From Paraphysomonas bandaiensis (lineage: Eukaryota > Protista > Chrysophyceae), in the NCBI GenBank assembly GCA_965644295.1, contig CBFFRP010000199.1:496001-560000 (forward strand): 64,000 bases of DNA. Reading direction: 5' to 3'. The position numbers and the translations under genes are program-made. Shown piece by piece: positions 5,980-58,911 of this stretch (position 1 is the first letter of the stretch; every line of letters begins with the position of its first letter). The notes beneath the pieces are model-generated. The model had not been told where the DNA came from. It did not search any database and saw nothing but the letters and a program-made list of their open reading frames with translations.

Positions 5980-6573
5980 ATCTATCAATCAGTCAACCGA
6001 ACCCTCTCATGATATCATTAATCAAAACATCATTAGATATGAAGTACTTTCAACATCACTGAGACTGTTATAACAGGTCTGATGATGTGTTCTCTGCTCT
6101 GTCTATCTAGCAACAGTATCAAGGGTGGCCGGAGGGCTCACAGGAACACTGCCACTGGACTGTTACAGCACTGTATCATACTGAGAGTACAGCAGTACAG
6201 CACCATATGCTGATACACATATGTACACACACATAGACGTACTGCTGTATTTGTAGAGGAGTACGGAATCCAGTACCTGTAGGGGAACCATCCGTATGAG
6301 CACCACACTGACGATGACGGCACTGTATACCTTGTATAGTATACGGCAGGTAATACGGTGAGCTCGCACACACACACCAACAGATGCACCATGATGATGA
6401 TGGATATGACCGTTGATGTTTGCTCACATGCACGTGCTCATGGGTGCTGCTGTACAGTGCTGTGCTCTGTGCTGCATATATACACACACCAAAACATATC
6501 ACTCTTTACTATTCATCTCAGTGAGCGACTGATCATATATTATTTGCAGGATACAATAGAGTCAAGTTGCTCA

Positions 6574-8820
6574 ATGAAAATGACACGCGCTTCGATGGAC
6601 GAAGAGAATATTGCAGATTTAACGAGCATAATCGCTGAGTTCCCAGAAGGTGACGACGACCCGAAACGATTACCAATCAAAAAACTACAAATGACATTTG
6701 ACGATATGGCCAAAGGAAACAAAGACGACGGGTGTATGAAAGTTTATATCAGAGTCCGCCCCATTGCAGCTAAAATTGAAAGCACTGTTCGAGTTGCGTC
6801 TGATACGAGAATAGTCACAAGTGCACCAGAGGTGTCTCGCAGAGCCCAATACACTCGCACTGAAGAGCGACACTATTCCTTTCATCGTGTCTTTGGTCCA
6901 ACCACAGCTCAGTCAGATGTATTCGATAAAGCTGTTCTTCCTTTAGTAACTAGATTTATCAACGGCGAGAGTTGCATCCTCTTCGCTTATGGAATTACCA
7001 ATGCTGGCAAAACGCACACAATTCAAGGAACTCCACAAGACCCAGGAATACTACCCCGATTAGTAAACAAGCTATTAGAAGAGCTTTCACCTTCAGATAA
7101 AGCAGATATAACTTTATCTATGTTTGAAATATATCAGGAGAAGTTATTCGACCTTTTGTCGAAGCGTACCAAATTGTCTGTCCGTGATAGAAATGGCCAG
7201 GTTGAGATCAACAACTTATCTCATCATCCTGTGACTTCATCAAAAGAGGCTCACAAACTTATAACTAAAGGGTCATCAAAGCGGTTCGTAGTGTAATGGG
7301 ATACATATTTTTACTGACAAGTTCACTGTTCAGATCCAATGGACATACCTTGTTGAACTCAGGGTCAAGTCGGTCGCACGCCATCTACACCATTTCACTA
7401 CGAGGACAGGAGTTTCAGATTATTGATTTAGCTGGTGCAGAGAGAAAGTATGTCTTGACTGTTCTATTCGTATATATTCACACGTGTTTGTTAGCTCTCG
7501 TACGAAAGCATCCGGGGCACAAGCGAAGGAGGCGAACAATATCAACATGTCCCTCATGCAGCTGTGGCGATGTCTTCAAGGGCTCAAGAAAAGGGTAATT
7601 TTATTATCTATGAGGTCCATATACTGTCTCAAGCGTTTATATATGTGCAGACGAGTGACTCTCAGGAAACAATCCCCTGTCGTGAGTCAAAGTTGACTCA
7701 CGTGCTTATGAGTCGTCTCTACAGCATCGGTACAGCTGGTATTGCGATGATCGCCTGTATAAATCCATCAGATAGTGATTACGACGAGACTCTTTCAGTA
7801 CTCGGTAATGCATCTCTCGCTTGTGATATCAAAGAGGTTGCACCAATGGCACGACTGCAACAGCAAAGGAGTTCTGTGCTCGCTGCACCTGAGAGACCTG
7901 TAAGCCGTAAGCGCGATGCCAGTGGGATGCAGCGCAAGTCTTCTGTAGTTGGTGCGGTGGCGGAAGCTCAGGCGGCTCGAGCGGAAGCACAGCAAGCAGT
8001 AAAAGCTAAAGCTGCTCAGGAAGAAGAGTTGATGAATCTTCAAGAGAAAATTGCTTTGTTGGAGGCGGAAAACGCTGAGTTGACAAGAGGACAAGTGCTA
8101 AGAGAGCAAGAGATCAGGGAAGAAGTCTGTGGAGAAATGGCGGAGAGAAGCTCGTCACTACTAGAACGAATTAAGGAGCTTCAGGATGAGCTATATGATT
8201 TAAAGAACGATCGTTCTGATCTACACAAGTCAGTCAAGAAAGCGAAGCGGATGCACAGCTTACGCACACAGGAAGTCACCACTAGAGATTTGCAGGAAGC
8301 AGAGGAAGAGTTGGAAAGTACAAGGACTGCCTATGAGAAGGAAATTAAGAGCCTTAAAAACGAAATCCGAGCACTGAGAGCGGAGGCATCGGACTGGAAG
8401 AAGAAGGCTGAGACAGCAATGAGGCAGCTTGCTAGAAGGGATACGGAGTCATCAACTACTAGCCAAGGATCTGCGTGTTCAAATAATGAAAATGATGTGG
8501 CCAATTCCGTGGCTGAGAGTTTCGACAAAAGGTTTAATAAGCATCGAAAGCCGGCAGAAATGAGTCCTAAGTTTGGATCAAAGAAACACGAGCAGAAGAG
8601 AGAACCTCTTAGTCCTGTATCCCCCAATGTGTCTTCTGGAGAGGATTCGGTGTCCAGTAACAAAAGCAGAAAGATACCAAAGATGCGACCCAGACCACAG
8701 TCGCCTTATAGAGAGAGTGATGCTCCCCCAATAGCCCCTCCTCAGCGTGAAATGATTGTTGGTTCCGGTCCCTTTTATCCGACACGTTCTCTGAGATCAC
8801 AGTCACAGTTGAGAGTTTAG
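6574..8820 (+). CDS. Kinesin-6 (MKLP/KIF20-like), 3 short introns
   Basis: Motifs KVYIRVRP, AYGITNAGKTHT (kinesin-6-type P-loop), EIYQE, SSRSH, DLAGAER, PCRESKLT, followed by a coiled-coil tail. Confidence 0.88.
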
Positions 8821-9465: not shown

Positions 9466-10425
9466 GTACGCAATAGGTGAGACCAAATCATAGCAGTTAC
9501 GAAGGAAGTAAATTCAGCTATTGATGTAGATCTATATAGGATATTTCTGGACGTGTAATATACTGATGAACAGATAATAAACTTATATATTATGTAGAGT
9601 AGAACAGATGTTCACCAGGTGATATTAAGAAGCGCAAGCTTGTGCGTTGCCGCGACCAACCTAACAACTCGCGCGACACTAAGCATAACAGGGCTCTCAT
9701 CTATTGCATGCACCGGCAAGTGCCCAACTATACAACACGACTTAGTTAGCTACATGGGCATACGACGAGTTGCGTGTTTAATCCGGGTCATACGCACCTG
9801 CCCAATCTACTTGTCCTAACACAAACAACTTGCGGTCGGTGTCTTCGGCATATTATGTCTCCTGTATATGCGGCAGATCTTTAGGGCTCTCTTCAAGGTG
9901 GTGTTCACAGCAGCAGGTGGTCTGGAAGGGAGAATAAAGTAGCTCTATAGCACCGGGTCCTCCCACGGTCATGAAGCGGTCTCACTGGTGCAATTTTGCA
10001 CACTGACGCATGAAACAGACATCTACCAAAATCTGTTACAAATTCAAGCTGACTCCAATGTCTTCCCTCCATATTGTGTGCACTCGTCCAGCACATGCAT
10101 TCACCTTGCACTCTTCTCCCGAGTGACTTACACTAGTAGGAAACCGTGCACCTTCCCCGCTCGGATGAAAACCTACGAAGCAAGAATAACATAAAAGCAT
10201 CACAAATGTACCTGACACTGCTTGGAGAACAGTGCCAGAGCCTTGATATAATCTCAATGACCTGGGTCAGGAGAAACCAAGACTAGGCAGTATACGTGTA
10301 AGAAGACATGACAGGTCTAATCACATCATTGCCATTGCCATGCATCCATGAGGAAAGTTTGACGCATTACCTCGGTCATTGGCCACACAGATACCGAATA
10401 ATGTGAACTCATACTCAGCATCAAT

Positions 10426-10819
10426 CACTCAAAGCAAACGCAGGGAGCAAGCAGAAAGTTGATATACCTGACATCTGCTGACTTCAGGTTTTTTGAGTTC
10501 TTAAGGTGAACATCCCGGATGCTTAACTTCAGCAGGCAGCCCAATACCCCGGTTACCCTTCTGGTGGGCCCTGTCCCGGATGCCCTTTTGAGGTGGGCCC
10601 ATTTCCGGATGCCTGTTTATTCGTCAGGGCCCAAAGACGTCTACACAAGTGACACTTATTTGTGTCCCTTGTACCACACAAGCATTTGGCTATGAGTGGG
10701 CAGAACAATATATCTGCTGACTATATAATATGCGGCTCACGTTAGTTTCCTGGAGAAATATCTCCGGTGCTTATCCCCCAGAACACCACGAAAAGGTGCG
10801 AGTCCGACTTTGTTGAGGG
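10426..10819 (-). mobile_element. SINE-like repeat copy (head and body, tail missing)
   Basis: Reverse complement aligns to 57975-58270; 5' end at CCCTCAAC. Confidence 0.85.
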
Positions 10820-11184: not shown

Positions 11185-12450
11185 TAGTAGCGAATGTCTG
11201 ATTACTAGTTGTAGGTGTGTAACAAATTTAGCTTTGCCTTCAACAAAGTCGGACTCACACCTTTTCGTAGTGTTCTGGGGGATAGGTACCGGAAATATTT
11301 CTTCGGGAAACTAACGTTAGCCGCAAATATATACCGCAGATAACGCTCTGCCTACTCATAGTGTCATTTGTGTAGACATCTTTGGACCTTCGAATAAACA
11401 GGCATCGGGAAATGGGCCCACCTGAAGGGCATCAAGTGTATCCGGGCTATTCACCTACTTATAAAAACAGAGAACAAAAGTGGTTACACCTTTGTGCTTT
11501 GCGATGCCGCACAAGCAGTATTCGTAGCGCCAAATAGTGGGATATCAGTGTTAAGAACTAGTTTAACTTTAGTTAAATTGTTTTGCTACATACATTAGTT
11601 CTGAATCTTAAAAGTATATTATTGCTACTAATCAGATGTTCACTTCTTAACGTTGCAATTTAATTAAGAAGTACTTACCTCTGATATCCTACTATATATT
11701 AGCGCTGCGAAAGCTGCTTGTGCGTCACCGCAAGCACCAAGGTGCAACCACTTTAGCTTTATTACTCAAAGCAAACGCAGTGAGCAACAGGCAGACTGTT
11801 GATATAACATCTGACATATTCAGCCCGGATTCTTGACTTCAACTTCAGCAGGCAGCTCATTACCCCGGTTACCTTCAGGTGGGCCCATTCCTGGATACGG
11901 GTTTATTCATCAGGGCCCAAAGACGTCTACTCAAGTGCCACTTATATTAGTGTCTCTTATATCACACAAGCATTTGGCTATGAGTGGGAAGAACGTTATC
12001 TGCTGACTATATTTGCGGCTCATCCGTTTTGTCATGTAATAATCAGACATTCTATTGAACTACAACCAACTCCTACGTGCGTACTTGAAGTTTGGTAGAG
12101 CCAATCGCTAGTAGCTATCCTGTATTCTATGTAGCAATGAAATACAGAATATACATGACTACACTATAGTAGGAGTAGCTATTACAAAGAAACTGAAAGT
12201 ATAGTAGCTGTTAAACATACGATTTGTAGAACAGAATGCTGATGTTGGTGAATGACGTGGTTCCTAAATCAACATCATAATTTTCACTATATATATCTCT
12301 AAACGTAATTCAGGAAATACTACACTCTTAAAAGCTTAACTTAATACATTCTTATTATATATTTGCGGTTCATGTTAGTTTCCGAGAGTAACCTCGCCGG
12401 TTCTTATTCCTCAGAACACCACGACAAGGAGCAAGTCCAACTTTGTTGTA
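11185..12450. mobile_element. Cluster of SINE-like copies: plus copy 11237-~11645, minus copy ~11650-12022, head fragment ~12361-12448, tail fragments ~11185-11220 and ~12036-12055
   Basis: Shared motifs CAACAAAGTCGGACTC, GTGGTT(G/A)CACCTT, AATAGTAGGATATCAG and TAATCAGACATTC. Confidence 0.8.
12055..12285. repeat. Dispersed ~230-bp repeat; second copy inverted at ~58515-58762
   Basis: AACTACAACCAACTCCTACGTGCGTACTTG...GACGTGGTTCCTAAATC matches the reverse complement of ~58515-58762. Confidence 0.8.
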
Positions 12451-13959
12451 ATCAGCTATTTTGAAATGTAAAGACTGGTGGGATAGCAAGGCACAGAGTA
12501 AATATTTAGTTAAGTTTTCTGACGAGCAGATGAATTATCTAGTTTCTATATAATATAGTGGAATATAGTACATACATATCTTTTACAACTGTTCTGTTTG
12601 ATGAGTCCGTTCACGTAAGCTAAATTCGAAGTTGAAGTGAATTCCAGAGAATTAAATTGCTCAATCGGAAAACTGGAAGAAGGTGGTCTTTGCCAGTAAA
12701 AAACTACAAGGGTAACTATCCTGAGAGATCTAATTGTGGAACTCCATCATTGTTACGGAAGAGAGAGTTCAAATCGCTCAATAGGCAAATCACACAAGGA
12801 CTTCAAGGGTGGTGACAAATGTGTCAGAATGAGCGTGAAGACGAGTGTAGCCTTCAACAACGGATTCTCGTCAGCGGTAAGTACTATTCACAACCACAAA
12901 GCACTCAGTCGGACTGCAACTTTTCTTTTCTAGAGTGAAGTAGAATATGTATCGTTGAACAGCAATTATCTGTGAAGAAATAGTGTACAGGTCGTATAGG
13001 TCAACTTCGATGTATTGCTAACAGGAGAGCAAAGATTTATTTCCGTCAAAGCTCTTAGCGAAATTTGAGTGTAGCCAAACAATATCCCGGCAATTCATGT
13101 AAGAAAAAAACATATCAAAGGAGGTTGAAATGTGATACATATTGGAACACCCAGAGAAAAAATAAAAGTAAGCATCGAGTCGCCAGGTAGAATTTAGTCC
13201 ACAGGTAAGAGTTAGTTTGAAATACTGAGTTCGAATTATTTTGAGACTGTTCGCATAGGGTCACCGGTCTAGGCGTTGGCGTTCCCACTGAACTTGACAA
13301 TTCTGCTAAGAGTAAGTGAACAACTCAGAAATGCTTCGCTGTCGTTCCGAGTGAACGTAATGTACACTACGCAGATAATATTTCATGGATTCGAGGCCAC
13401 TACATGCCGACAAACATGATATGCAAATGAAAAATGTATTGGACCAAAGCAAATGTGGCTTCAAACAGTGCAATTATTAAGCAATCCAATTTATCATTTC
13501 CATCTGCTCACAGCCAGTAATTTGATTGATACTCATCAGCACCTAGGAAAAATTACAGATGCTCATTGCGGCTTCCACCATAAAAATATGAATCGAAACA
13601 TCGCCTTAAACAATTCAGCAACAAAAGAACATCTTAACAGTTTAATCGACAACAATTCAAAAATGGCAATGCAAATGTTTATCAATTGGAAGATCGTGGT
13701 CAAATATACAAATACTACAACCGTTGAAATATTGTAGCAAAAACATAATCCGATCATTTCCTAAATTTCCGACTCACCGAATAATGATTCCATTCCTCTC
13801 AACGCTGGTTATTCCAACACCAGTAATGCCCACACGTATTGCGTCTGAAGTCTGTGCAATTTGATGAACAACCCAAACTGTCTCCAAATAAACGTTTCGT
13901 ACTGATCAAATTATATTTATTCGACTGAATATCATGCTTTTTCAATGACATTGGCGGAC

Positions 13960-14210: not shown

Positions 14211-14763
14211 ATTCCTTAGAGAAAAGGAAAATATGTATTCAAACAGGTAAAGATGTCTCGGAACATGAAGGCCTCCTCATTAGTTGTGGACACGAGTGCT
14301 GGGCTGGACACCTCAATCACAGGAGACATTACAACGAGAGATAGACGCATATATCGACGACATGAGGTCACAGAAAAAGAGAATGGGACGGCCTTATAAT
14401 AGAACATGAACCCATATCACCGTCACACTATGCCTCCTCACAATCATACTGACAGACCTCAGAGTACAAAAACGGCAACCCATCTCACTAATCGGACACA
14501 CTAGAAGAGATTACCAACCATTTCCGAAAATGAAAGATACTGCCTACTGCTACAGTCCACAGGCTACAGGACATGTGCGCGGATTCATATCATGCTCCTA
14601 TCCAACATCACCCACACCGTACATGGAAGTATCCTCATACTGCTATAGTTTTTTTGTATTTCTATAGTCAAAAACAAGTCGACTCAGCATGGACGGTCAT
14701 ACAATGCAAACCGCACCCGCTCTCGTTCCGCTCGCGGAAGTTAAGTTGCATCTGGCCCGGTTA

Positions 14764-16548
14764 CACGCGTTCTTAACAAAAAAAAACCTACCCACAAATC
14801 CTACCTTTTTCAAAACCTCGGTGGTGAGGTTTTGGGTTTTCGTTTTGCACCGTACTAACAAAAAAATCCTCCCCATAAACCAGAGGATTTCGAAAACCTC
14901 TGCATTCGTCCACCAGGTTTGAATATTTAAACAGTGTACTATAGAATTACTCGATAAATCATTATTATTCGATAATATAAGGTTAAAAATGGACACTTCT
15001 TCAGTTTCCAATGACATGGGCGGGTTTGTTGACCCTCAATAGGAAGCAGATATTGATGATATCGAGTCACCAACTCTTGGAACAATTGAAGGTCGAGGCT
15101 TCATCATTGACATATCAGACTTGAGTGAAGTTGTGACATAAGAAGCGTTTCGAAGAGAGACTGTTCATTGCTGTTGGTAATTCGGCTCAGTTTTCCATGG
15201 TGAGATGAATCTCAGGAGTGAGTATCTACATAGAAACGTAGACGAGCGTCGAAGGAATACAGGCAACAATTTCTGCGCGAGAAAACGAGCAAGGAATTAC
15301 GGAATACGAGATAGATCTTGCGGAGTGGGAGTTCGGAAAGCAGTTCCATCTAGCTGCGTCAATGAGAGCATCAAAGTATAGCCATGAGATAAAAGATAAA
15401 CTGTTAGCCATGAAAACTATTCGTAGTTCGTAGTATATAGTATATAGTATTCACTAGCTTCAGCTCCACCCCCATCAGTAAATTTTAATGACAGTAGTGT
15501 AAAATATGATAGCTAGGATGTTGCGAACACTCACAGTTGGAAATGTTAACGACTGATGTGATGACTTTGCCATTATTAAAATACTTAACGATATATAACG
15601 GTAGTGAATTCAATTGTTGATAGCGTGGCGAATACATGGTAATGAAAGTGACACTATTGATAAACAAATGCAATACGTGAAGGAGGGATATGTATACAGT
15701 CACACCTATTGCAACGTGCCCCAGGGGACATATCTGTGTTGGTCAACATTCAACATAAGGCAGCCAAAGAACTCTTGACTGGTGTCTAATATTTTGGAAG
15801 TCAATAATAATTGTTATTATCATCATTTTCAGTGTTCTACACTGTTGATTACACACAGTCTCCCTACTCAACATAGTAACACAAATCACAGTCTTTACTC
15901 TTTCAAAGGAAGGATATAGAAGGACTAAATTATAAGTGTTACTTTTTCGGTCCTCTCCAACAAATCTCAGAAGATAATGTGCCATATATATATATCATGC
16001 TGCTGGGAGTAGATTTCCTCTTTCATCATAGTTAACTCATGATGAATCTTCGGTATAATCTGGGATAAGTTGTTAAAGATAAGTTTGTATCGTCGACAGA
16101 GGATCGCCAACAGAGCGATCCTGAGTTCATTGCGATTCAGTATATACTATTCCCCATAGTACAGGTGGCATATAGTAATAGAAAAGGTTTGCTCAAATTT
16201 ACCGCACTCCTTCGTCAGTGTCCAGCCCATAATATGGATCTTCCATACCAGATACTTCTTCACCACTATCACTGTCAACGTCCTCCATTAGCACATCCAT
16301 GGTCAAGGGCTAAACCAGTTATAATATGTGTTTAGTGTGCTCTATTTGTTATATAATATCGATTCATATGGTACATCGACCAGACCATAGGTTTTGGACC
16401 CGAGGTTTTGAAGGACCACCCGGATGGTCGTTCAAAACCTCACCCCCCCATTTTTGGGTAGGTTTTGAAAACCTCCTATGGGTAGGTTTTGTAAAAGGTA
16501 GGATTTTTCCGAGGTTTTTTGGTAGGTTTTTTTTGTTAAGAACGGCTG
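14764..16548. mobile_element. Non-autonomous TIR element with 3-bp TTA TSD (Harbinger-like; CACTA not excluded)
   Basis: TIR CA(CG/GC)CGTTCTTAACAAAAAAAAACCTAC at both ends; TTA at 14761-63 and 16549-51; subterminal AAAACCT/AGGTTTT repeats; decayed convergent ORFs inside. Confidence 0.75.
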
Positions 16549-26010: not shown

Positions 26011-28307
26011 TATGGCTTCAGTGTTATATAACGGTTGTCAAACTATGAGATGTACTATGTTAAAGTTGGCGAACACATAGTCCCTTCAAACTGATAATGT
26101 TGCTGGCAAAATGTTGCTGAAAATGTTCCTAAATCTATAAAGGGGCTTTTTTCAGCAACATTTTTAGGAAGAAAAACATGCGAGGAACATGTTCCTCAAA
26201 ATGTTCCTAAAAAAATGTTCCTAAATGTATAAGGGATACCCTAAGATGATAGGAGGTATACCGGTATACCGTACCTGCAGAATACCATGCATAGATATTT
26301 GGCAAGCGGCTATTGAACTCGAATGATACTCTGAACTGAGATACGAGTCAGAGTCGATCCCGTCTGCTCTCAACTGAATGTATTCTGTCGCATTATTTCT
26401 GCATTTCTGACCGGAAGTTCATTTACTTTAAGTTTCACTGCAACACAACAACAACAGATAGCAGGCGCTATTACGCAGGTACTGTAGCGGCCTGAGCACC
26501 ACTTATAGATACCCTTCTGATGAAGATGAGAAAAATAAGGAAGAATTACCATTTATGATTGTTTGAAACTCTGGTTAATCGTAACTATTTTGTGGTAACG
26601 TGTTTATGTATTTGCATTGCCGAGTACTATCAAGAAAAACAACATGAACTACATATGAGTCTAGGCTCTGAGTGTATTCAACCTTCAACTATGAAGTATA
26701 TCCAGTAATTATCGCCGTAATATGCGTTGGATAGAAGACACCACTAAATACAGCTCGAAACTAGGCATATTCATGCTGCGTCAGATGTATGAAGCCTACT
26801 CATGTCTTCCAACTCTTTCTACGAAACGACATCTCCCTGAGTAGTTGGAAACGGTGTTGCTTATGTAGGATGCCGTACACTATTAGTTTTATTTTCAGAA
26901 ACAAGGCATCACAACGAAGGTCATACTTACTAGATAGCGCATTCCAGCATCCACGAGGCCTATGTGTATGCCGCTAATCATGATGTAACTGCTGTTAGTC
27001 CCACGCTTACTTGTACTAACGAACATTTTGCACTTCCTCTACTGAACGTAATCGCTCTGTGATGTATTTAGTTCGTGGACTCTTTGGCACTTGCAGATCA
27101 GGATTGTACCCAGAGAAGACGTTAGTGATATCTATTTCACTCAATAGGGAACAAGTGGCAGTTTGTATCAATGTGCACATTGATCATACTTCATGCGAGT
27201 TTAATGAACACATAAACATACAAAACAAGAGTGATACAAGTAGTCTTATGAACTCTTTTTCTGAATGAGATATCGACATACGAAGTCTGTGTTGGAAATG
27301 TGCTCCTGTGTACCAGAACCACGGCTGCTATATATATAAAACCACGTCGCTGATATAGAGTGTATAATAATACACAGTGGAGTTATAGATCAGCGACGTA
27401 TGATACGAGAAAAGAAACTTACAATAATTTGTTATCAGAGGATATTTTAGATAAAAGAATCGAAGAGATAAAACTGACGAAAGATTTTGTAAGTTATAGG
27501 TCTCATATTAAACCTCTATATTACTTCTGAATAAGAATTTACCTATCAAGTTCAGCAGAAACTACTTTCAAAAATGATTTTTAGTTTATTGTATTAACGA
27601 AAATCGTTGGAGTTAGACATGTATTACTAGGTAAACTTTAAACTTTCTTTACAGCACACATTGCTTACTTCATTAATACACACTTCAAAGATATGGTTTA
27701 TTTACTGAAGCATACTTCTCCCATCACCCACAGGACATAAGGTGAACGACTGATCTCCTCAATTAAAGTCACGACACCTTAAATAATTTACGTAGCTCAA
27801 CAAAAGTAACGGAGTGCATTCCTTCGCAACTAAAGTTTCCTGTTCCTACAGTTGAGTTCTGCTATATGAGAGCAATTGAAAGCTGTAGTTCTAAGCTACG
27901 TTACGAGTAGTTTACGGTTGTAGTAAATGTAGTAAACTGTATAATGAGAGCTAATGTCATGACGATGAGCATATAGTAGTGAAACGGAATATATAGTCAC
28001 CAGTACATGCAAGTTAGTGACGACATAAGAACGTACCAGAAATGAATGGTAAAGATAGCATGAAAGTAGTGAATGATAAGAGATATTGTTTATAATCTAA
28101 TCAGAATAGAGTGAAAGTATTGTTCAGTTATGGCATTTTCTAACACCTACTGAATACGTTTGTTTTCCCCATTGTACTACATTACCTTTCTCCAATAGAA
28201 TTGCAACTAATAATATTAGCTAGTGTAATTTCATGTTTTACACAATTTAATAGCGATTAAATCAATTCCTATTCATGTAATTACTACATTGAAGGTCTTA
28301 TTATTAG

Positions 28308-28815
28308 TGCCCCATTCCGAGGGCGTGGCCATAGTGTAGGCTGGCTGGTGCCCCACCTAAAACACCGAGATATAGCACTGATTCTACTACCCACCCACCC
28401 GTGTACCAACGTAGCTGACCACATAGATCACGCGCAGATTCTGTAGTCCCCTCCACCTGTGTTAACCTTTGCTGAGATTACGCGGGATTTCTCATAATTA
28501 TGCATGACTTTTATACATGTAATTCGCGCAGATTCTATTAAGACCATGTGTACCTTCCCATCATTACCTAACAAAGATTACGCGGGGATTCTCGTGACCA
28601 TGCATGACTCAGTATAGGTCTAGTGTGACTTTGGCCACCCCCCCTCCCTCCCCTAGAATGCGCGGGGTTTCTCGTAATCTAGGCTATCAGGTATTGTGTA
28701 GATCTAGCTAGAGCTTTCTTGATGTCAACACACGAATAATACGCTGAGATTTTTATTAATAATCTATACGTTACTTAGCTTAGTCAACACTAGGGTACGC
28801 TCTCAGAATGGGGCA
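28308..28815. mobile_element. 508-bp MITE with TG..CA ends, 19-bp TIR and 5-bp TSD
   Basis: TGCCCCATTCCGAGGGCGT / ACGCTCTCAGAATGGGGCA (2 mismatches); TSD ATTAG (28303-07, 28816-20); internal repeats of (GATTA)CGCGGG...TTCTC. Confidence 0.8.
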
Positions 28816-29508
28816 ATTAGCAGTAGGCGTTAGTTTAGTAGGTAGAAGAACACTAGTCAAGCTGGATAGACGTCTATCTGTAACTAACTAGTACGAACTC
28901 TATTATCCTACTATTTAACGCTACAGAGGCTGCTTGTGCGTCGCTCTATCGCTCCACGCAAACGCCATGAGCAAGCAAAATGTTGATATACCTGACATCT
29001 GCTGACTTCAGTTTTTTTGAGTCCTCAAGGTGAACATCCCGAATGCTTCACTTCAGCAGACAGCCCAATACCCCGGTTACCCTTCAGGTGGGCCCTGTCC
29101 CAGATGCCTGTTTATTCGTCAAGGCCCAAAGACGTCTACACAAGTGACACTTATTAGTATCCCTTGTACCACACAAGCATTCGGCCATGAGTGGGCAGAA
29201 CAATATCTGCTGCCTATATATGCGGCTCACGTTATTAGAATATGGACTGTATCCTAGTATATTCAATGTGGTACTTGAAGACAATGTACGAGAATACAGT
29301 GAAGTATGGTGATGTGTAGATGCTGTTATGATATTGAGAAAACTGAAATAGTTTGCTCTTTCAAGATATGTTTAGTAGCGAAAGGTCTACAGAAGTAGTG
29401 ATTTATGCATGGCACAAAACGAGCTTGTGTTGTTTAACACAATTTGTGTAAACGATATTAATAAATCTATCTAGTCTAACAACTTAATCTCTCTTTGATC
29501 TAAGTAAA

Positions 29509-32253
29509 ATGAGCATTTCCCAACATGGTAGCGAGCGAGGAGGAGAGAAGGAGGATAGAGGAGTAGTTCCTCAGTTCAACGAGACTAACGTTGAACAATG
29601 GATTGAGGACTTCGAGACATTCCTTATGAGGAAGGAACAAAGCGAGGTAGCGGTGGAACTGCCACCTAAGGAGAGCGACTTCGGGGAGCAGCCACTTACG
29701 TTGATGGAGGAGAAGGCGTACAGACAGGCTGTGAAGAGGTATTGGAAGGCGAACGCCATAGCTTATTCTTACTGCAGGGATGCGGTGCAGCATTCCCCGA
29801 AAGCGCTGCGTAAATTCCATCTTACCCACAAAGCGTTCAAGGCAGAAGGGAGTGGTGTAAACAGGTTCAAAACACATGTAATGATTGATGAGTTGAAGAA
29901 GTGTTTTGCTGGAGGGAAGCAAAATAGGATCAGTGACCTCTTAACTCAATATGGTTCTTTCCGTATGCGTCCGGAGGAGACGGCGAAGGACTACGTACTA
30001 CGGTTCGAACTACTGCTGAAGGAACTACAGGAGCAGCAGCAGGATATCTCGGAGGTATCAAAAACAAGTCGACTACGAGAAGGCTTGCTCAATGAAGAGT
30101 ATGCTCAACTGAGAGTTGGATTATACTTGATGGATGATGATGTTAATTATGTAACTGTATCACGTAAGATAGAAGGCTATGATGATACTATGGCTGGGAA
30201 GGAAGCGTTGGAGAAGAAGCGTAAAAGAGTGGAGGAGCTGAACCTGATAGACAGTAAGAAACGATATCGCAGAGAGAGGGATCATCGTAAGAAGAACAAC
30301 GGTAAGAAGAAGCCGATGAAGAAGGATACAGAGATTACAGGGCAGCGACCTGGAAGTGCCGAATATACTGGGTGCAGAAATTGTAAGTCAAAGGAACATC
30401 TTGCCATCGATTGTCCAGCATCGAAAAAGAAGTACTCGCAAAGCAAGAGCAAGGCTGTGAGGTTTCAAGATGGAAGGAAACCAGACAAAAGACTACTTAC
30501 AGTTGAAAACATCAGGCGTGGAGAGCCAGCGGATTTGTCTGACGAAGACGAAGCAAATATGATCGAGCAACAGGAAGAGTATCACTTGTCATGTAATGTG
30601 TATGAGACGAATATATGCAGTAGTGTGCATGAGGATATTCACTATACATACATTGATACCTGTTGTTCGTCATCAATGTTTTTGATAAATGATGTGAATA
30701 TACTTGATAGTCATATGCACACATCAAAGGTTATTAATGGTTCGAAAAAAGGGTCAGAGATATGCGTCACGAGTGTAGGTTCCCGTGGAGCATGGAAGAA
30801 CATTGAGGTATCAAGTCAGATAAATCGGTGTCTTTGTTCTGGACGGAAGTTGAACGATATGGGATATCGATTTACTGTATGGTATGGTATACAGATATAT
30901 GACAGAAATACGGATGAGCTGGTGTTGGAGGGACCTATGAAGAATGGAATGACTGCTGTGCCAACACAGCAGTTATTGGAGCTTCCAGACGTATCGACAT
31001 CCAGTGATTCAGAAGTAAATCTCAGTGACCGTACGGGTGAGGATGAACTGGAGCTGTTACATAGGAGAGCGGGTCATTTTAACAAGCATGCGTTGGTAGA
31101 AGCCCACAAAAGAATGCTAATTATTGGGACTGGACTGAAACGAAAACATCTCTCGAAACGTGTTTCCAAAGAACAGTGTCTATGTGATGTATGCGCCAGG
31201 GCGAAGATCACCAGAGTAAGTTTTCGGACAAAGGATGAGGACTCCGTTCGTCCAAATTTCTCGGCCGATATAGCAGTATACTTAAATTGTCCAGCTCGAG
31301 GAGGGGAAATATATGTGCTCAAACTAACACACCATGCCAGTCGGATGTTCTGGTCGGAAGGGCTTGTTCATAGGACTGGGTCATCGGTACTGCAGGTTTT
31401 CAAGAAGATTTTTGAAGGAGATGTGAAAAGGTACAAATTAGAAATGCATCATTACCATGCAGATGGAGCAGGGGAGCTAATATGTGATGAGCTGCGACAA
31501 TATCTTAGGTCACAGGGTTGCTATCAACATACGTGGAGCTCTACGGACTCTCCTGAGATGAACGCGATTGAGGAGCGGAAATTCAGGACCTGTGGTGAGA
31601 TGACATTAGCGATGCTGATTCAGTCAGGATTGCCTTCACAGTTTTGGCTAGATGCCTACATGGCAGCCAGGTACATATTAATTCGATTGCCTACAAAGAC
31701 AGCGAAGGGGTATATGTCCCCTCTTGAATTTTTGACTGGTGAGGCTCCCAACCTGAAATATCTCAGAGTATGGGGGTGTCGTGCGTATGTCCTCACTACA
31801 AAGGCGGATCGACGGAAAGACTGGGACGACAAGGCCCTTATCGGATATCTGATAGGATATTCAGATGAAAAGGTAGGATATGATGTATATCTACCTGCGA
31901 CTGATAGGGTCGTCACGTCGGTACATGTATTAACTGATGAGTCCATACCGTCACGCTCGGAGAGCTATTTCGCTGAGATAGATGCTCTTCGAGTGAAGGA
32001 GGCCGAGAGACCGAAAATTGTGTCTGACTATGCGGGCTTAGAAGGTACATATCATATTGATGATGAGGATGGTCTTCTCTACAAGACCACGAGAGTAGTA
32101 GAACGAAAGGGGGTAATAGTAGCCTATCGATCTCTGGTAACTGCAGGTCGGAAGCATATCGAGCACCGGGTGCCGATTCACGTCGAGGACGTAGTGCGAA
32201 TGACTGCAGAAACTCCCGGGAATACCGGATATATAGGAAAGGGGACGCCCTGA
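29509..32253 (+). CDS. Copia Gag-protease-integrase polyprotein
   Basis: Zn knuckle CRNCKSKEHLAIDC; protease YIDTCCS; integrase HRRAGH..CDVC, ADI, HADGAGE, AIEERKFRT, LRVWGC. Confidence 0.93.
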   Translation: MSISQHGSERGGEKEDRGVVPQFNETNVEQWIEDFETFLMRKEQSEVAVELPPKESDFGEQPLTLMEEKAYRQAVKRYWKANAIAYSYCRDAVQHSPKALRKFHLTHKAFKAEGSGVNRFKTHVMIDELKKCFAGGKQNRISDLLTQYGSFRMRPEETAKDYVLRFELLLKELQEQQQDISEVSKTSRLREGLLNEEYAQLRVGLYLMDDDVNYVTVSRKIEGYDDTMAGKEALEKKRKRVEELNLIDSKKRYRRERDHRKKNNGKKKPMKKDTEITGQRPGSAEYTGCRNCKSKEHLAIDCPASKKKYSQSKSKAVRFQDGRKPDKRLLTVENIRRGEPADLSDEDEANMIEQQEEYHLSCNVYETNICSSVHEDIHYTYIDTCCSSSMFLINDVNILDSHMHTSKVINGSKKGSEICVTSVGSRGAWKNIEVSSQINRCLCSGRKLNDMGYRFTVWYGIQIYDRNTDELVLEGPMKNGMTAVPTQQLLELPDVSTSSDSEVNLSDRTGEDELELLHRRAGHFNKHALVEAHKRMLIIGTGLKRKHLSKRVSKEQCLCDVCARAKITRVSFRTKDEDSVRPNFSADIAVYLNCPARGGEIYVLKLTHHASRMFWSEGLVHRTGSSVLQVFKKIFEGDVKRYKLEMHHYHADGAGELICDELRQYLRSQGCYQHTWSSTDSPEMNAIEERKFRTCGEMTLAMLIQSGLPSQFWLDAYMAARYILIRLPTKTAKGYMSPLEFLTGEAPNLKYLRVWGCRAYVLTTKADRRKDWDDKALIGYLIGYSDEKVGYDVYLPATDRVVTSVHVLTDESIPSRSESYFAEIDALRVKEAERPKIVSDYAGLEGTYHIDDEDGLLYKTTRVVERKGVIVAYRSLVTAGRKHIEHRVPIHVEDVVRMTAETPGNTGYIGKGTP

Positions 32254-32258
32254 GTACT

Positions 32259-34220
32259 ATGCCAGCCAGGGTGCTGGACCAGGGAAGACCTGGAGGGTTA
32301 CAGGAGAGTCCTGACCCAACCTGTCAGGAGACAGCTGTGAGGTTGCAGACCTCTGAAGACTATGAGTCTGGGGTTGTGAGCGGGGCTCCTCCCACAACGC
32401 ACGATGTGCGTGCTCAGGATGAGCAAGGTACGGGTTCTTATATACCTCGTCGACCGATTGAACTAGATGGTGATGGTCGGGTCCGACGCAAACGGCTGCA
32501 GCGGAGACTGGCAAACGCGTCAGTTTTAGGAGAGATTAATATGGTTGAAGTACCGGATGCGCATAATATTGATCTTAACCATGCAGAGACAGAAGATATC
32601 AAGATACCAAATTCATATGCCGAGGCAGAGAGATCTCCACAGTATCAACAATGGAGAAAAGCTCGAATGGTGGAGAAGACATCATTGCTGAAAAGACGTG
32701 TCTTGAAGATCGTGAAAATTCCAAGCGGAGTGAAATTAGTTAGAGCGAAATATGTGCATACGGTGAAGCGAGACATACTAGGGAATATAGTAAAGTACAA
32801 GGCTCGGCTAGTGGCATTAGGAAATCTCCAAGAGAAGAAGGAGGAGGAGCCGTCCACTTTCGCTCCAGTGGTTAAGGGTATAACCATTAGACTAGTGTTA
32901 GCGATTGCGTTTATGTTACAGATGCATGTGCATCAATTAGATGTATCATCCGCATTTTGCTATGCAGATCTGGAGGATGACGTGTATATGGCACCTCCAC
33001 CAGATGAGGAATTACTAGCTGGATGGTGTTTTCAACTAATCAAGGCATTGTATGGACTGCGATCTTCACCGCGACAGTGGAATAAACATATTGACAAGTT
33101 TATTAAATCATTGCATTTTACTCCGTGTATTTTGGATACGTGTTTGTATATGCGATGGAGTAACGGAAAACTGCATTTATTATTGATATATGTTGATGAT
33201 ATCATAATTGCATCCGCTGATCTGACTTACTTGGAAAGCGTAAAGCGTAGGTTCTGTGAAACATTCGAGATGCATGATCTGGGAGTGTGTAAGCGATTTC
33301 TGAACATCAGGATAACCAGAGGAGAAAATTGGTATATGTTAGATCAATCTGAGTATGCTAAGAATATTATCAAGAAATTCAGCTCAGTTATGGGAAAGAG
33401 TAGTAAGAATAAGGAGGCCCCACTACCTACTAATGTTCAGGATCTGTTGGCAGAGGAACGTGAACTTACGGAGGAGCAGAAGCAGTGGGTTGACTCATTT
33501 CCGTATCGGCAAATTATTGGAGCAGTGTTGTATCTAGCAATGCATACTAGACCTGATCTGGCTTATGCAGTGGGGTTATTGTCTCGATTTAGTAGTTGTC
33601 CGACATATGCATCGTGCAAACTGGCGATTCACTTATTGAAATATTTGCGTGGAACAATTGATGAGGGCATCAGATTCAGTGGGAGTGAGTTCGACTTACA
33701 TGTGTTCAGTGATTCAGATTGGGCTGGTGATAGACTGACTCGGCGATCGACAACAGGATACATTGTGTTCTTATGTGCAGGCGCATTGGCCTGGCAGTCT
33801 AAACTACAGACCACAGTTGCAACTTCGAGCATGGAATCTGAATATATGGCGGAGTATGCGGCTATGCAAGAACTGGTGTGGCTTCGGGGGGTGTTCAAGG
33901 AGCTCGGGCTCTTAGTTGCGAAGCCGACTCCATTCTTTATGGATAGCAAGAGTGCGAAAGATCTCTCCGAGAATCCTGTGTATCATAAGAGGTCGAAGCA
34001 TATAGACATCAAGTATCACTGGGTGAGAGAGCATGTAAATGGAAAATTTCCTACGGCAAAGTTGATTCATGTGTCGACGGATGATATGGCGGCTGATATT
34101 TTCACGAAGGCATTGTCAACGAAACTTTTCAGTCGTCATGAGAAAACTATTACCGGGGTTAAGAGAAGTGTGTCAACCAGAGTTGAGGAGCAGCAGAAGA
34201 AGCGACCCCGAAGAGGTTAA
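32259..34220 (+). CDS. Copia reverse transcriptase-RNase H, in the -1 frame relative to ORF1
   Basis: KARLVALG, QLDVSSAF, KALYGLRSSPRQW, IYVDD, SDSDWAG, RSKHIDIKYH. Confidence 0.93.
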   Translation: MPARVLDQGRPGGLQESPDPTCQETAVRLQTSEDYESGVVSGAPPTTHDVRAQDEQGTGSYIPRRPIELDGDGRVRRKRLQRRLANASVLGEINMVEVPDAHNIDLNHAETEDIKIPNSYAEAERSPQYQQWRKARMVEKTSLLKRRVLKIVKIPSGVKLVRAKYVHTVKRDILGNIVKYKARLVALGNLQEKKEEEPSTFAPVVKGITIRLVLAIAFMLQMHVHQLDVSSAFCYADLEDDVYMAPPPDEELLAGWCFQLIKALYGLRSSPRQWNKHIDKFIKSLHFTPCILDTCLYMRWSNGKLHLLLIYVDDIIIASADLTYLESVKRRFCETFEMHDLGVCKRFLNIRITRGENWYMLDQSEYAKNIIKKFSSVMGKSSKNKEAPLPTNVQDLLAEERELTEEQKQWVDSFPYRQIIGAVLYLAMHTRPDLAYAVGLLSRFSSCPTYASCKLAIHLLKYLRGTIDEGIRFSGSEFDLHVFSDSDWAGDRLTRRSTTGYIVFLCAGALAWQSKLQTTVATSSMESEYMAEYAAMQELVWLRGVFKELGLLVAKPTPFFMDSKSAKDLSENPVYHKRSKHIDIKYHWVREHVNGKFPTAKLIHVSTDDMAADIFTKALSTKLFSRHEKTITGVKRSVSTRVEEQQKKRPRRG

Positions 34221-35461
34221 AGGTGTGTTTTAGTGGGTGAGAATCCCACATAACTATATATCTAGTTGACTGCTAGTTATATATGTATCTTGATAAGATT
34301 TCACATCTATTTTACCTATGAGACTAGTTTATAGCATGAAGATCACTGTACTCATTGTTGTTTCGTATCACTGCATTCTACATTGAGTGGGAGTATTAGA
34401 ATATGGACTGTATCCTAGTATATTCAATGTGGTACTTGAAGACAATGTACGAGAATACAGTGAAGTATGGTGATGTGTAGATGCTGTTATGATATTGAGA
34501 AAACTGAAATAGTTTGCTCTTTCAAGATATGTTTAGTAGCGAAAGGTCTACAGAAGTAGTGATTTATGCATGGCACAAAACGAGCTTGTGTTGTTTAACA
34601 CAATTTGTGTAAACGATATTAATAAATCTATCTAGTCTAACAACTTAATCTCTCTTTGATCTAAGTAAAATGAGCATTTCCCAACACACGTTAGTTTCTC
34701 GGAGAAATATTTCCGGTACTTATCTCCCATAACACCGCATAAAACGTGCGAGTCCGACTTTGTTGAGGGATGTAATTACTAGTGATACATACACATGCAT
34801 GCGTTTGCTGCAAATTAACGACAAATCTTGATATATGCTAAATTTCACCTAATCTTATAGTTCATTACAGTACACCATCTAGTTCTCATTATTGCTTGCG
34901 CATGTAACAGAAAAGCAATAACTGTACCCCAATGAATGAACTGATTATTACTCAACAGACCAATAGTACTCCAGCTACACACTCTACTACTCTAGTCTCT
35001 AGTACCAATACTTATTACCTGACACTAGCCGGGAGTCTCTGGAGCTTAAAGCCATTTCTGATACATTATTTCTCTTTTTACCACGACTGAGAGCATTGCT
35101 CAGTAAGTCGAGCATATCCACTACCTCACCTGCATGGTCTTCTTTTTCCATTTCAAACACGGTTTCATGCTGTAAATCAGCACATGAATCAACGACGTAC
35201 TCGGACTGAACTTTCACTGCGCATTTCAAATGCTTTTCTCCCCTCCAATACTAATAGGCATACTGCTTGCTTGCGTCGTCTTCAATAACCTCGAGACATA
35301 CACTCTCCGCTTTTCTACAGGTCACGGGAACCCACTTGTCACGCTCATTTTGTCGATAATGAGGCATAAACCTTCACAATAGCTCTCCCGCATAGTGATG
35401 AAGCTTGCAATACGAACTCACAGTTAATAATGGCACGATTCACAGTGTATTCGCTCTCTCA

Positions 35462-56904: not shown

Positions 56905-57974
56905 TTGTAAACTCGTAGGCATATTTCTCAGTGAGAGGGGTTAAAACTTAGTGAGCGTTATCATCAAAGTTTCCAATTAGTTTTACTTGCTTTCTTCTAA
57001 ATGTAATTAATTACAGTGACTGTGTGGTATGTGAAATATGAAATGAGTGTATAATTCCTAGGTTATGCAATAGAGCATTTGGATATTGGTATGTGCATGT
57101 GCAATACCTGCAGCCCAAAGTGGACACTTTCTTGGCTTGTTTATTCCAATTACTGGAAAATTGTATATTGTACGTACGTAGTACAAATTGCACGTCGGTT
57201 TTCACAGAATCGTTGAGGCATGAACATAACAAAAAGTGCAATAATGAATATTGCGAAAAGTCACCTAAAGCAAGAGTTTTTTCCGCGACATGATTTTATT
57301 CTCAAGCAGTAGCAGTAAGAACAATTCAATACTAATCAAACTATTCATATGTGAAATCAAAAGCCATTTGAGCAGAGCAGAAACTAGCATTCCTAATGTT
57401 TTATAAGGGGTCATTGACTTACAAATATGACGTAGTTTGTATAATATAGTAATTTATTGGTTAGATTTTATACAGCTTTTAAAGATTTTTATGCTACTTT
57501 AGTACTTTTATGGATACTGCTGCCAAATTATTGCAACATATGTTGCTTTGAAAATAAAAAAGTAAAAATAAATAGTACAAACCCATCATGTTGCACTGTA
57601 ATATCTTTTCATTCCCGATTATATTATTTCATTATCTTAAAGCCTAAATCACAAAAGATTGATCGCAAAAACAGAAGTGACAGCAAAAGAAAGATAGGTG
57701 TATTATATAGAGATCATCAAAGCAAAAAGACTGCTTTCACCTCATGACTACTATTTGCTGTTTGCAGCAGTAGCAGATGCTAAGTTTGGTTATATCTTTT
57801 TACCAGGTTTATTCGTCCTATGGACTTAACGTATAGACGAGACACAAGAACATCAAATTGGGATTCAAAAATTTTCAGAAACGAGAAAATACCCGAGTAT
57901 CGTTACATGTCTCAGACGGTGATGTGGGATATAAATCGATGATATGTGAAGAAGGTGAATCCAGTTAAGGGGTA

Positions 57975-58440
57975 CCCTCAACAAAGTCGGACTCGCACCT
58001 TTTCGTGGTGTTATGGGGGATAAGTACCGGAGATATTTCTCTGGAAAACTAACGTGAGCCGCATAATTTTATATAGTCAGCAGATATTCTTTTGCCCACT
58101 CACAAATGCTTGTGCGATACAAGGGATACTAAAATATAAGTGTCACTAGTGTAGCCGTCTTTGGGCCTTGGCGAATAAACCGGTATCCGGGAATGGGCCC
58201 ACCTGAAGGGTAACCGGGGTATTGGGCTGCCTACTGAATTCAAGCATTCGGGCTTCTCACCTTAAGAACAGAGAGCGAAAGTGGTTTCACCTTGGTGCTT
58301 GCGGTGACGCACAAGCAGTTTTCGTAGAGCTAAATAGTAGGATATCAGAGTGAAGCACTAGTTAGTTAAATTGCAATGCTACATCAGCTTCTGACTCTTA
58401 CGCGCCTATTTATTGTTAATAATAATCAGACATTCACTAC
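57975..58440 (+). mobile_element. Uninterrupted SINE-like copy (reference copy)
   Basis: Runs from the CCCTCAAC head to the TAATCAGACATTCACTAC tail; no ORF; TSD not evident for this copy. A further tail fragment lies at ~58767-58862. Confidence 0.85.
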
Positions 58441-58911
58441 AAGTAGCTTTCGTTATTAAATTAAGCTTGTAGTAGTACAGTATAGACTAAATTACGTTAA
58501 GAGAGATATTGTAAAAATTATGATGATGTAGCACTGTGATTTAGGAACCACGTCAATCACCAACATCACATCAACATTCTGTCCTACAAATCGTATCTTT
58601 ATCAGCTACTATATTTTCGGTTTCTTTGTATACTTGTGATAGCTACTCCTATAGTGTAGCCATGTATATTATGTATTTCATTGCTACATAGAATGCAGGA
58701 TAGCTTCTAGCGATAGGCTTTACCAAACATCAAGTACGCACGTAGGAGTTGGTTGTAGTTCAACATTCGTAGTGTTAAATAGTACGTAGGATATCGAGTT
58801 AAGAGTTAAGCATTAAGCACTGACTCTTAAATGTCTCGTGCTAATAACAATAATTCATTACTAAGAAAATTGGATTCTGGTTCGTAATGAAGACATACTT
58901 CAACTTGGAGA

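Follow-up and report, generated by a model that had tools for sequence, protein, structure and literature searches.

The window, by which we mean the whole 64,000-nucleotide stretch of DNA that was analysed, holds host genes, an LTR retrotransposon and copies of a non-coding, SINE-like element. A kinesin gene at 6358-8820 (+) is split over two ORFs with its motor domain in two parts, from which it follows that introns occur in host genes. For the ankyrin-WW protein encoded nearby (1115-2413, -), the nearest named homologues are those of Phaeothamnion and Ectocarpus. The SINE-like element is present as a whole copy of 464 bp at 57975-58438 (+), made up of a head, a body and a LINE 3'-UTR tail, and no recognisable TSD (target-site duplication) was found for this copy. 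Its head, at 57975-58061 (+), is a candidate HDV-like ribozyme of the L1TcRz/Pr77 type with predicted cleavage 5' of C57975.

A 25-mer of the head was located at 10795-10819 (-), 11237-11261 (+), 34745-34769 (-) and 57975-57999 (+) with 0-1 mismatches, the chance expectation being 0. The four heads reported in the initial annotation were thereby recovered at their sites, and a fifth, decayed head starting at 12452 (-) was added to them (12368-12452, -, roughly 82% identity). The copy at 9620-10819 (-) is a near-full member of the main 1.2-kb family, with 96.6% identity over 1,208 nt and its head at 10733-10819 (29.2 bits with the CM R1 described below), while the head at 11237-11323 (+) belongs to an older, diverged copy (CM 16.5 bits). 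Heads also occur in head-to-head pairs, 6 nt apart at locus L006 (about 1536-1690) and 417 nt apart in the window (10819(-)/11237(+)), an arrangement suggestive of insertions that are nested or clustered close to element 5' ends.

The copy starting at 34769 was broken at about position 80 by a Ty1/copia insertion (RVT_2). Its head, nt 1-82, occupies 34687-34769 (-) and its 3' part lies at 28288-29234 (-), terminating AATAATAAGACCTTCAAT(G) immediately before the TSD. The 12-bp TSD claimed for this copy, TAGTAATTACAT, was confirmed on both sides, at 34770-34781 and 28275-28286. The P2 3' strand of the same copy is consequently to be read at about 29230 and is not the GTGTGTTGG beside its head. 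The Ty1/copia-type LTR retrotransposon itself spans about 29235-34686 (+) and carries ORFs at 29509-32253 and 32259-34220 with SH3_retrovirus and RVT_2 domains; AACGT(G) is duplicated at the insertion junctions in the split copy.

The number of heads in the genome was estimated with a 22-mer at no more than 3 mismatches. This gave about 1,510 heads in the 62.5-Mb, 669-contig assembly, compared with 0 for a reversed control pattern. In 30 out of 30 fetched genomic copies flank similarity stops exactly upstream of CCCTCAAC, and in most of the 30 copies TSDs of 10-14 bp bracket CCCTCAAC...TTTTCAAT(AT). The TSDs abut C1, and no extra 5' base precedes C1 in the fetched copies with TSDs. Similarity also breaks at 57973-57975 in more than 160 contigs from a public DNA run of the same organism. 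A run whose label names another species contains the family as well, at 90-95% identity. C1 of CCCTCAAC is the first base of the element, fixed by TSDs, and the exact common 5' end proposed at the outset holds for every copy fetched.

The main family is a 1,212-bp element without an ORF. It terminates ...CTTCTTAATAATCAGATTTTCAAT(AT), has no poly(A) and is flanked by the 10-14 bp TSDs in most of the 30 copies. Main-family copies are 98-100% identical to one another and are therefore recent. The element had been described as a SINE, but most copies are the 1.2-kb element and not a short SINE. The 3' end without poly(A), taken together with TSDs of 10-14 bp, bears the mark of LINE-driven target-primed reverse transcription. 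In the window copy, nt 1-87 constitute the head, followed by a body of about 210 nt that is common to the 1.2-kb family and by a final segment of about 170 nt that is LINE-derived. This tail shares 88.8% identity with the 3' UTR of a LINE from another contig (the C440 LINE, G000:C440:4173-13235, -), and both terminate AATAATCAGACATTCACT. A terminal AATAATCAGA-type motif is common to other LINE and SINE-like families of the genome. Between the window subfamily and the main family, identity amounts to 96.6% in the head, 82% in the next 113 nt and 69% in the following 120 nt. Judged from these sequence identities, the head is better conserved than the body, which points to constraint acting on the head.

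The C440 LINE has a single ORF of 3,021 codons in which a SET methyltransferase domain lies upstream of an AP-endonuclease and an RT. Roughly 1,090 N-terminal and 770 C-terminal residues of its protein are without a Pfam match. Pattern, scorer and CM searches of 12.4 kb, of which 2.1 kb lie upstream of the ORF, found no head-like motif on this one LINE copy, whose 5' boundary is obscured by another repeat in the upstream DNA. Head and tail are the two parts that a SIDE has in common with its own LINE; here the tail is common with the C440 LINE, and no head was found in the single copy of that LINE that was examined. The repeat directly upstream of the LINE ORF (G000:C440:13101-14601) gave 814 first-look candidates at 75-92% identity and is interrupted by about 208 nt in this copy.

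The fold of the window head was then resolved part by part, all on the (+) strand. The P1 5' strand CCCTCAAC (nt 1-8, 57975-57982), whose nt 1 is the TSD-defined start, pairs with the P1 3' strand GTTATGGGGG at 58010-58019, which is 10 nt long compared with 7 nt in the other class members described below. The best P1 register runs C1-G45...C5-G41 and A6-U38...C8-G36 with positions 39-40 (A/C39 and U40) bulged, giving 8 bp as 5+3; within the head, genomic copies vary mainly at position 58013 (nt 39, part of the bulge). The P2 5' strand CGGACTCGC (nt 14-22, 57988-57996, with A17 bulged) forms 8 bp with the P2 3' strand GTGAGCCG (nt 80-87, 58054-58061), and this helix crosses P1. P3 is ACC/GGT around a 7-nt L3, TTTTCGT (57997-58009), and is embedded in the sequence CACCT-NNN-CGTGGTG, which does not vary across 14 class members, L1Tc Pr77 and drz-Fpra among them. 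It is followed by J1/4, ATAAGTA (58020-58026; class consensus NNNRGTA), from which A46 would pair with U28 of L3 as a single-bp P1.1, and by the P4 hairpin CCGGAGA-TATT-TCTCTGG (58027-58044), for which other copies show G-C, G-U and A-U alternatives. J4/2, AAAACTAAC (58045-58053), has C58049 in the position of the catalytic cytosine, and its GAARCUAA is a conserved element of the class that L1TcRz has as well. The assignment of this putative catalytic cytosine is by position, CUAAC preceding P2 as in three class members; L1TcRz has CUAAG at the comparable place. The helices of the initial annotation were all found in the sequence at the coordinates given for them, and only the P1 register had to be revised, to 5+3 bp with positions 39-40 bulged.

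In order to evaluate the fold, an HDV-topology scorer was employed that forces P1 from nt 1, takes a P3 of 3 bp and an L3 of 6-9 nt, and has P2 cross P1. One small bulge per helix was allowed, a C was required in J4/2, and P4 was taken as the best available hairpin. The candidate head scored 63. None of 2,000 dinucleotide shuffles reached this score (maximum 53, with 82% giving no solution), and among 504,238 natural 97-nt windows about 5 that are not heads did so, roughly 1 in 100,000, mostly palindromic repeats; as the ranges of the scorer were chosen after the candidate had been seen, the resulting p-value is indicative and not exact. The active T. cruzi L1TcRz (Pr77 sequence, PMC1874656) scored 58 and its published fold was recovered.

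These frequencies bear on one alternative, that the head is the ordinary 5' UTR of a LINE-dependent retroposon to which an HDV-like pairing was fitted by eye. Several deviations were allowed in the fit and short helices are easily found in 87 nt. No Rfam HDV-family model matched the head (57900-58500, E<=10), and the stability of its nested MFE fold is not unusual (z = -0.9), a measure that is uninformative here, as would be expected of a pseudoknot. As a further point against the ribozyme reading, copies within the genome gave no usable covariation for P1 or P2, isolated compensatory changes being about as many as disruptive ones; these copies are mostly young and decay neutrally. Against a fit by eye stand the rarity of the score in shuffles and natural windows, and evidence from outside the genome that is given in the following.

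The head and Pr77 have in common the CCCT start, CACCT-NNN-CGTGGTG (P3 and L3), AGTA in J1/4 and GAA(A/G)CTAA in J4/2. When the two were aligned globally, 13 of 5,000 shuffles scored as high. The first G of GAAACUAA is A in the window copy and G in the main family. Metagenome contigs were scanned with the pattern CCCT...CACCTNNNCGTGGTG...GAARCTAA, in which neither P1 nor P2 pairing is required. The scan returned 17 loci with 15 distinct sequences, and 13 of the 15 fold as complete HDV-like ribozymes with complementary P1 and P2. Two of these 13 are the Rfam HDV-F-prausnitzii ribozyme (84 bits), while the other eleven (loci L061-L077, of the ACC/GGU...AGUA...GAARCUAA type) do not attain the gathering score of any Rfam family. 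At least two metagenomic members lie on eukaryotic contigs, one with a HET domain (L068) and one with a split N-myristoyltransferase gene (L066).

P1 and P1.1 were counted in the eleven metagenomic members and Pr77 (n=12), leaving out the two drz-Fpra-type sequences. P1 of the class is a continuous 7-bp helix in which 82 of 84 cells are paired, a count equalled in 0 of 5,000 permutations, and six of its positions show 3-5 pair types. P1.1 is likewise variable in sequence: the first nucleotide of J1/4 pairs with the third of L3 in 12/12 members, as U-A, A-U, C-G or G-C. In the 14-member alignment 90.9% of the P2 and P3 cells are paired, compared with 34-46% when the 3' partners are slid, and double changes occur in all six P2 pairs. 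Covariation in P2 and P3 had been named earlier as a check on the fold, and it is seen at the level of the class. J4/2 of the class reads CUAAGA or CUAAC. The candidate agrees with these features in that its J1/4, AUAAGUA, is identical to that of two class members and, with L3 UUUUCGU, its A46-U28 pair follows the P1.1 rule.

A CM, R1, was built from P2, P3 and the sequence of the 14 class members with the candidate excluded. P1 was left out of the model and counted by script because differing J1/2 and P2 lengths kept MAFFT from aligning the P1 5' strands. R1 gave 18 matches in 123 kb comprising the window and the loci; 18/18 were heads and none was a non-head sequence. Intact heads scored 27-32 bits (E 3e-6 to 8e-5) and main-family heads 30-32 bits, the window head giving 27.1 bits (E 7.9e-5) at 57980-58060. 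By the class rule, cleavage is placed 5' of the nucleotide paired with the last base before the 7-nt J1/4. In the candidate this nucleotide is C1, so that the predicted site coincides with the TSD-defined first base and two independent definitions agree. The original proposal of an HDV-type head at the exact 5' end of the element is thus strengthened in modelling terms by a shared core signature, an independent CM, class covariation and a predicted cleavage site at the first base.

Returning to the fit by eye, a model built without the candidate finds heads and nothing else, and the J1/4, P1.1 and J4/2 features, which were not used in the first search, match as well. We regard this alternative as improbable. 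A conventional Pol III SINE, with a head derived from tRNA, 5S, 7SL or snRNA, was weighed in the same manner. The element is abundant, non-coding and LINE-tailed, as such SINEs are expected to be under this explanation, and there is 5S-like sequence elsewhere in the window. However, no tRNA and no Rfam family at E<=10 were found in 57900-58500, and a scan tolerating up to 1 mismatch showed neither an A nor a B box. There are also four T4 runs, the first at nt 26-29 and the others further downstream, and the main family has a length of 1.2 kb. The Pol III reading was rejected on the missing A/B boxes, the four T4 runs and the lack of a tRNA, 5S or 7SL match; we consider it extremely improbable. 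The initial statement that the head has no tRNA, 5S or 7SL similarity and no B box and contains a TTTT run was borne out by the Rfam search at E<=10, the box scan and the four T4 runs. Chance resemblance and a Pol III head are accordingly both taken to be unlikely. The 5S-like sequence is the only match in the window at Rfam gathering thresholds. It lies at 14689-14775 (+), is 87 nt long, scores 45.5 bits with 5S_rRNA against a gathering score of 38, and covers model positions 1-120; possible identities are a 5S-like sequence that has been shortened and the head of a repeat derived from 5S.

The main deviation of the candidate from its class is P1. In HDV-like ribozymes P1 starts at the cleavage site and is normally a continuous helix of 7 bp (6-7). 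The candidate has 8 bp with a 2-nt bulge, and a continuous 7-bp P1 is found in 12/12 other class members, so the early caveat of a bulged P1, atypical for the class, stands. Three further caveats raised with it lost their weight upon comparison with the class. A first P1 pair of C-G in place of a G start is the norm, being present in 9/12 class members; the supposed extra C before P2 is the CUAAC form of three class members; and P1.1, which had been expected to be U-rich, consists, like that of L1TcRz, of one covarying pair, here A46-U28. A variant with a canonical P1 was sought genome-wide with the CM, and the best match (C395, 39.7 bits) was rejected as a head with a J1/4-P4 deletion.

The bulge makes it conceivable that the head is a relic, that is, a Pr77-type HDV-like ribozyme crippled by a lengthened, bulged P1, whose 87 nt would act mainly as an internal promoter for Pol II, or as a 5' UTR module, with transcription beginning at C1. 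The bulged 8-bp P1 is found in the candidate alone, conservation of the head fits a promoter function equally well, L1Tc Pr77 combines ribozyme activity with a proven internal Pol II promoter function (PMC1874656, PMC3185411), and certain well-folded trypanosomatid Pr77 candidates with adequate predicted folds are inactive in vitro (PMC4035085). The remainder of the catalytic core is intact, however (L3, P1.1, the C of CUAA, P2 and P3), and the base of P1 lies exactly at nt 1. Moreover, the very young copies, 98-100% identical, all have exactly this P1, which implies that active masters used it. A relic is on this evidence somewhat unlikely, and the reading that we favour, with fair though not full confidence and from modelled structure, is that the head is a putative HDV-like self-cleaving ribozyme of the L1TcRz/Pr77 subclass at nt +1 of a LINE-mobilised non-coding retroposon family.

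It is established that R2, RTE and the trypanosomatid L1Tc/ingi clade have HDV-like ribozymes at their retroposon 5' ends; Pr77 has so far been regarded as a hallmark of trypanosomatids. The closest known system is L1TcRz/Pr77 of L1Tc, NARTc and SIDER (PMC3185411, PMC3383444, PMC4035085), where the HDV-like fold is likewise formed by the first 77-87 nt or so of a non-LTR retroposon with cleavage at +1, which is predicted here. Experiments have shown L1TcRz to be an active HDV-like ribozyme with its cleavage site at +1 of L1Tc and NARTc (PMC3185411, PMC3383444), and the same 77 nt also act as an internal Pol II promoter (PMC1874656, PMC3185411). Both systems have the CCCT start, a C1-G first pair, P3 ACC/GGU, L3 U-NNN-CGU, J1/4 AGUA, a single-bp P1.1 and J4/2 GAA(A/G)CUAA, and both are found on multicopy non-autonomous, non-coding derivatives. 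They differ in that the host here is not a trypanosomatid, its nearest named protein homologues being those of ochrophyte algae; in that P1 here is 8 bp with a 2-nt bulge compared with 7 bp; and in that the element here is without a poly(A) tail. In addition, L1Tc and NARTc share their head, whereas the partner C440 LINE (SET-APE-RT; one examined) is without it.

Comparable systems are the R2 ribozyme, R2-derived SIDEs (PMC3414825) and the HDV-like ribozymes of RTE, in which a 5' HDV-like ribozyme frees the element RNA from a co-transcript. R2 SIDEs are also alike in being internally deleted non-autonomous derivatives that retain the ribozyme and a 3' end recognised by the RT. R2 is nevertheless rDNA-specific, with a G-start P1 and other core sequences, whereas the family described here is dispersed, has variable TSDs and belongs to the ACC/GGU...CUAA subclass. 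The Faecalibacterium prausnitzii HDV ribozyme drz-Fpra-1 (Rfam RF02682) has the P3/L3 core CACaCCUCUaCGUGGuG in common with the candidate and a J4/2 of CUAAGA; it is bacterial, however, its J1/4 is AGGCAA compared with NNNAGUA, and its Rfam model misses the candidate. [quoted passage not shown]

The model of the HDV-like head leads to the following course of events. Transcription of the element would either form part of a longer RNA, of host or read-through origin, or start from an internal promoter, as it does in L1Tc. Nt 1-87 of the element would then fold into a nested double pseudoknot (P1, P1.1, P2, P3 and P4), and the J4/2 cytosine C75 (58049 in the window) would catalyse cleavage immediately 5' of C1. 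In this way the element would probably free its own RNA by a cut at the first base of the element; here self-cleavage, the role of C75 and the polymerase making the precursor are points that we infer. The released RNA would have a LINE-type 3' tail terminating AATAATCAGA(Y)(W)TTC, which a LINE reverse transcriptase may recognise and use for inserting copies at new sites through target-primed reverse transcription. The expected outcome is full-length copies that all start from C1, without poly(A) and with variable TSDs of 10-14 bp. The element had also been called promoter-less; this is not borne out, because the homologous L1Tc Pr77 doubles as a Pol II promoter.

Retroposons of this kind are already known, namely NARTc and SIDERs with Pr77 and the SIDEs of R2; what is new is the host lineage and the variant P1. 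Uncoupling of the ribozyme head from the 5' end of the LINE itself is possibly new as well. A tentative extension, to which we lend rather little weight, is that the head was not inherited from the partner LINE and that a free-standing module combined with a LINE 3' tail forms a composite SINE in which a ribozyme replaces the Pol III promoter head. Were this so, the element would rely on host genes for read-through transcription, and the Pr77-type "trypanosomatid" ribozyme would be an ancient and widespread eukaryotic retroposon module, because it is also found on fungal-type metagenome contigs.

For the favoured reading, an HDV-like ribozyme at nt +1, the results mean that a putative L1TcRz-type subclass member heads about 1,500 young non-coding retroposon copies in a eukaryote unrelated to trypanosomatids and probably belonging to the stramenopiles. 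Covarying ribozymes on eukaryotic metagenome contigs that are missed by Rfam, together with these roughly 1,500 heads, suggest a broader, under-annotated ribozyme subclass linked to retroposon RNA processing. The natural P1 variant, with 8 bp and a bulge, bears on the tolerance of the HDV fold. Furthermore, 1,500 potential cleavage sites in host transcripts could affect mRNA integrity, as has been proposed for Leishmania SIDERs.

A further repeat family of the genome is head-less and terminates ...AACGCCTATTGC(C/T)AAATAATAAGACTTTCAAT (L022, about 2700-2965; L028, about 1750-1815; and L082). The 3' UTRs of two LINE families match it with 76-79% identity along about 280 nt, and at L028 the tail of this family is followed directly by a 5'-truncated head.
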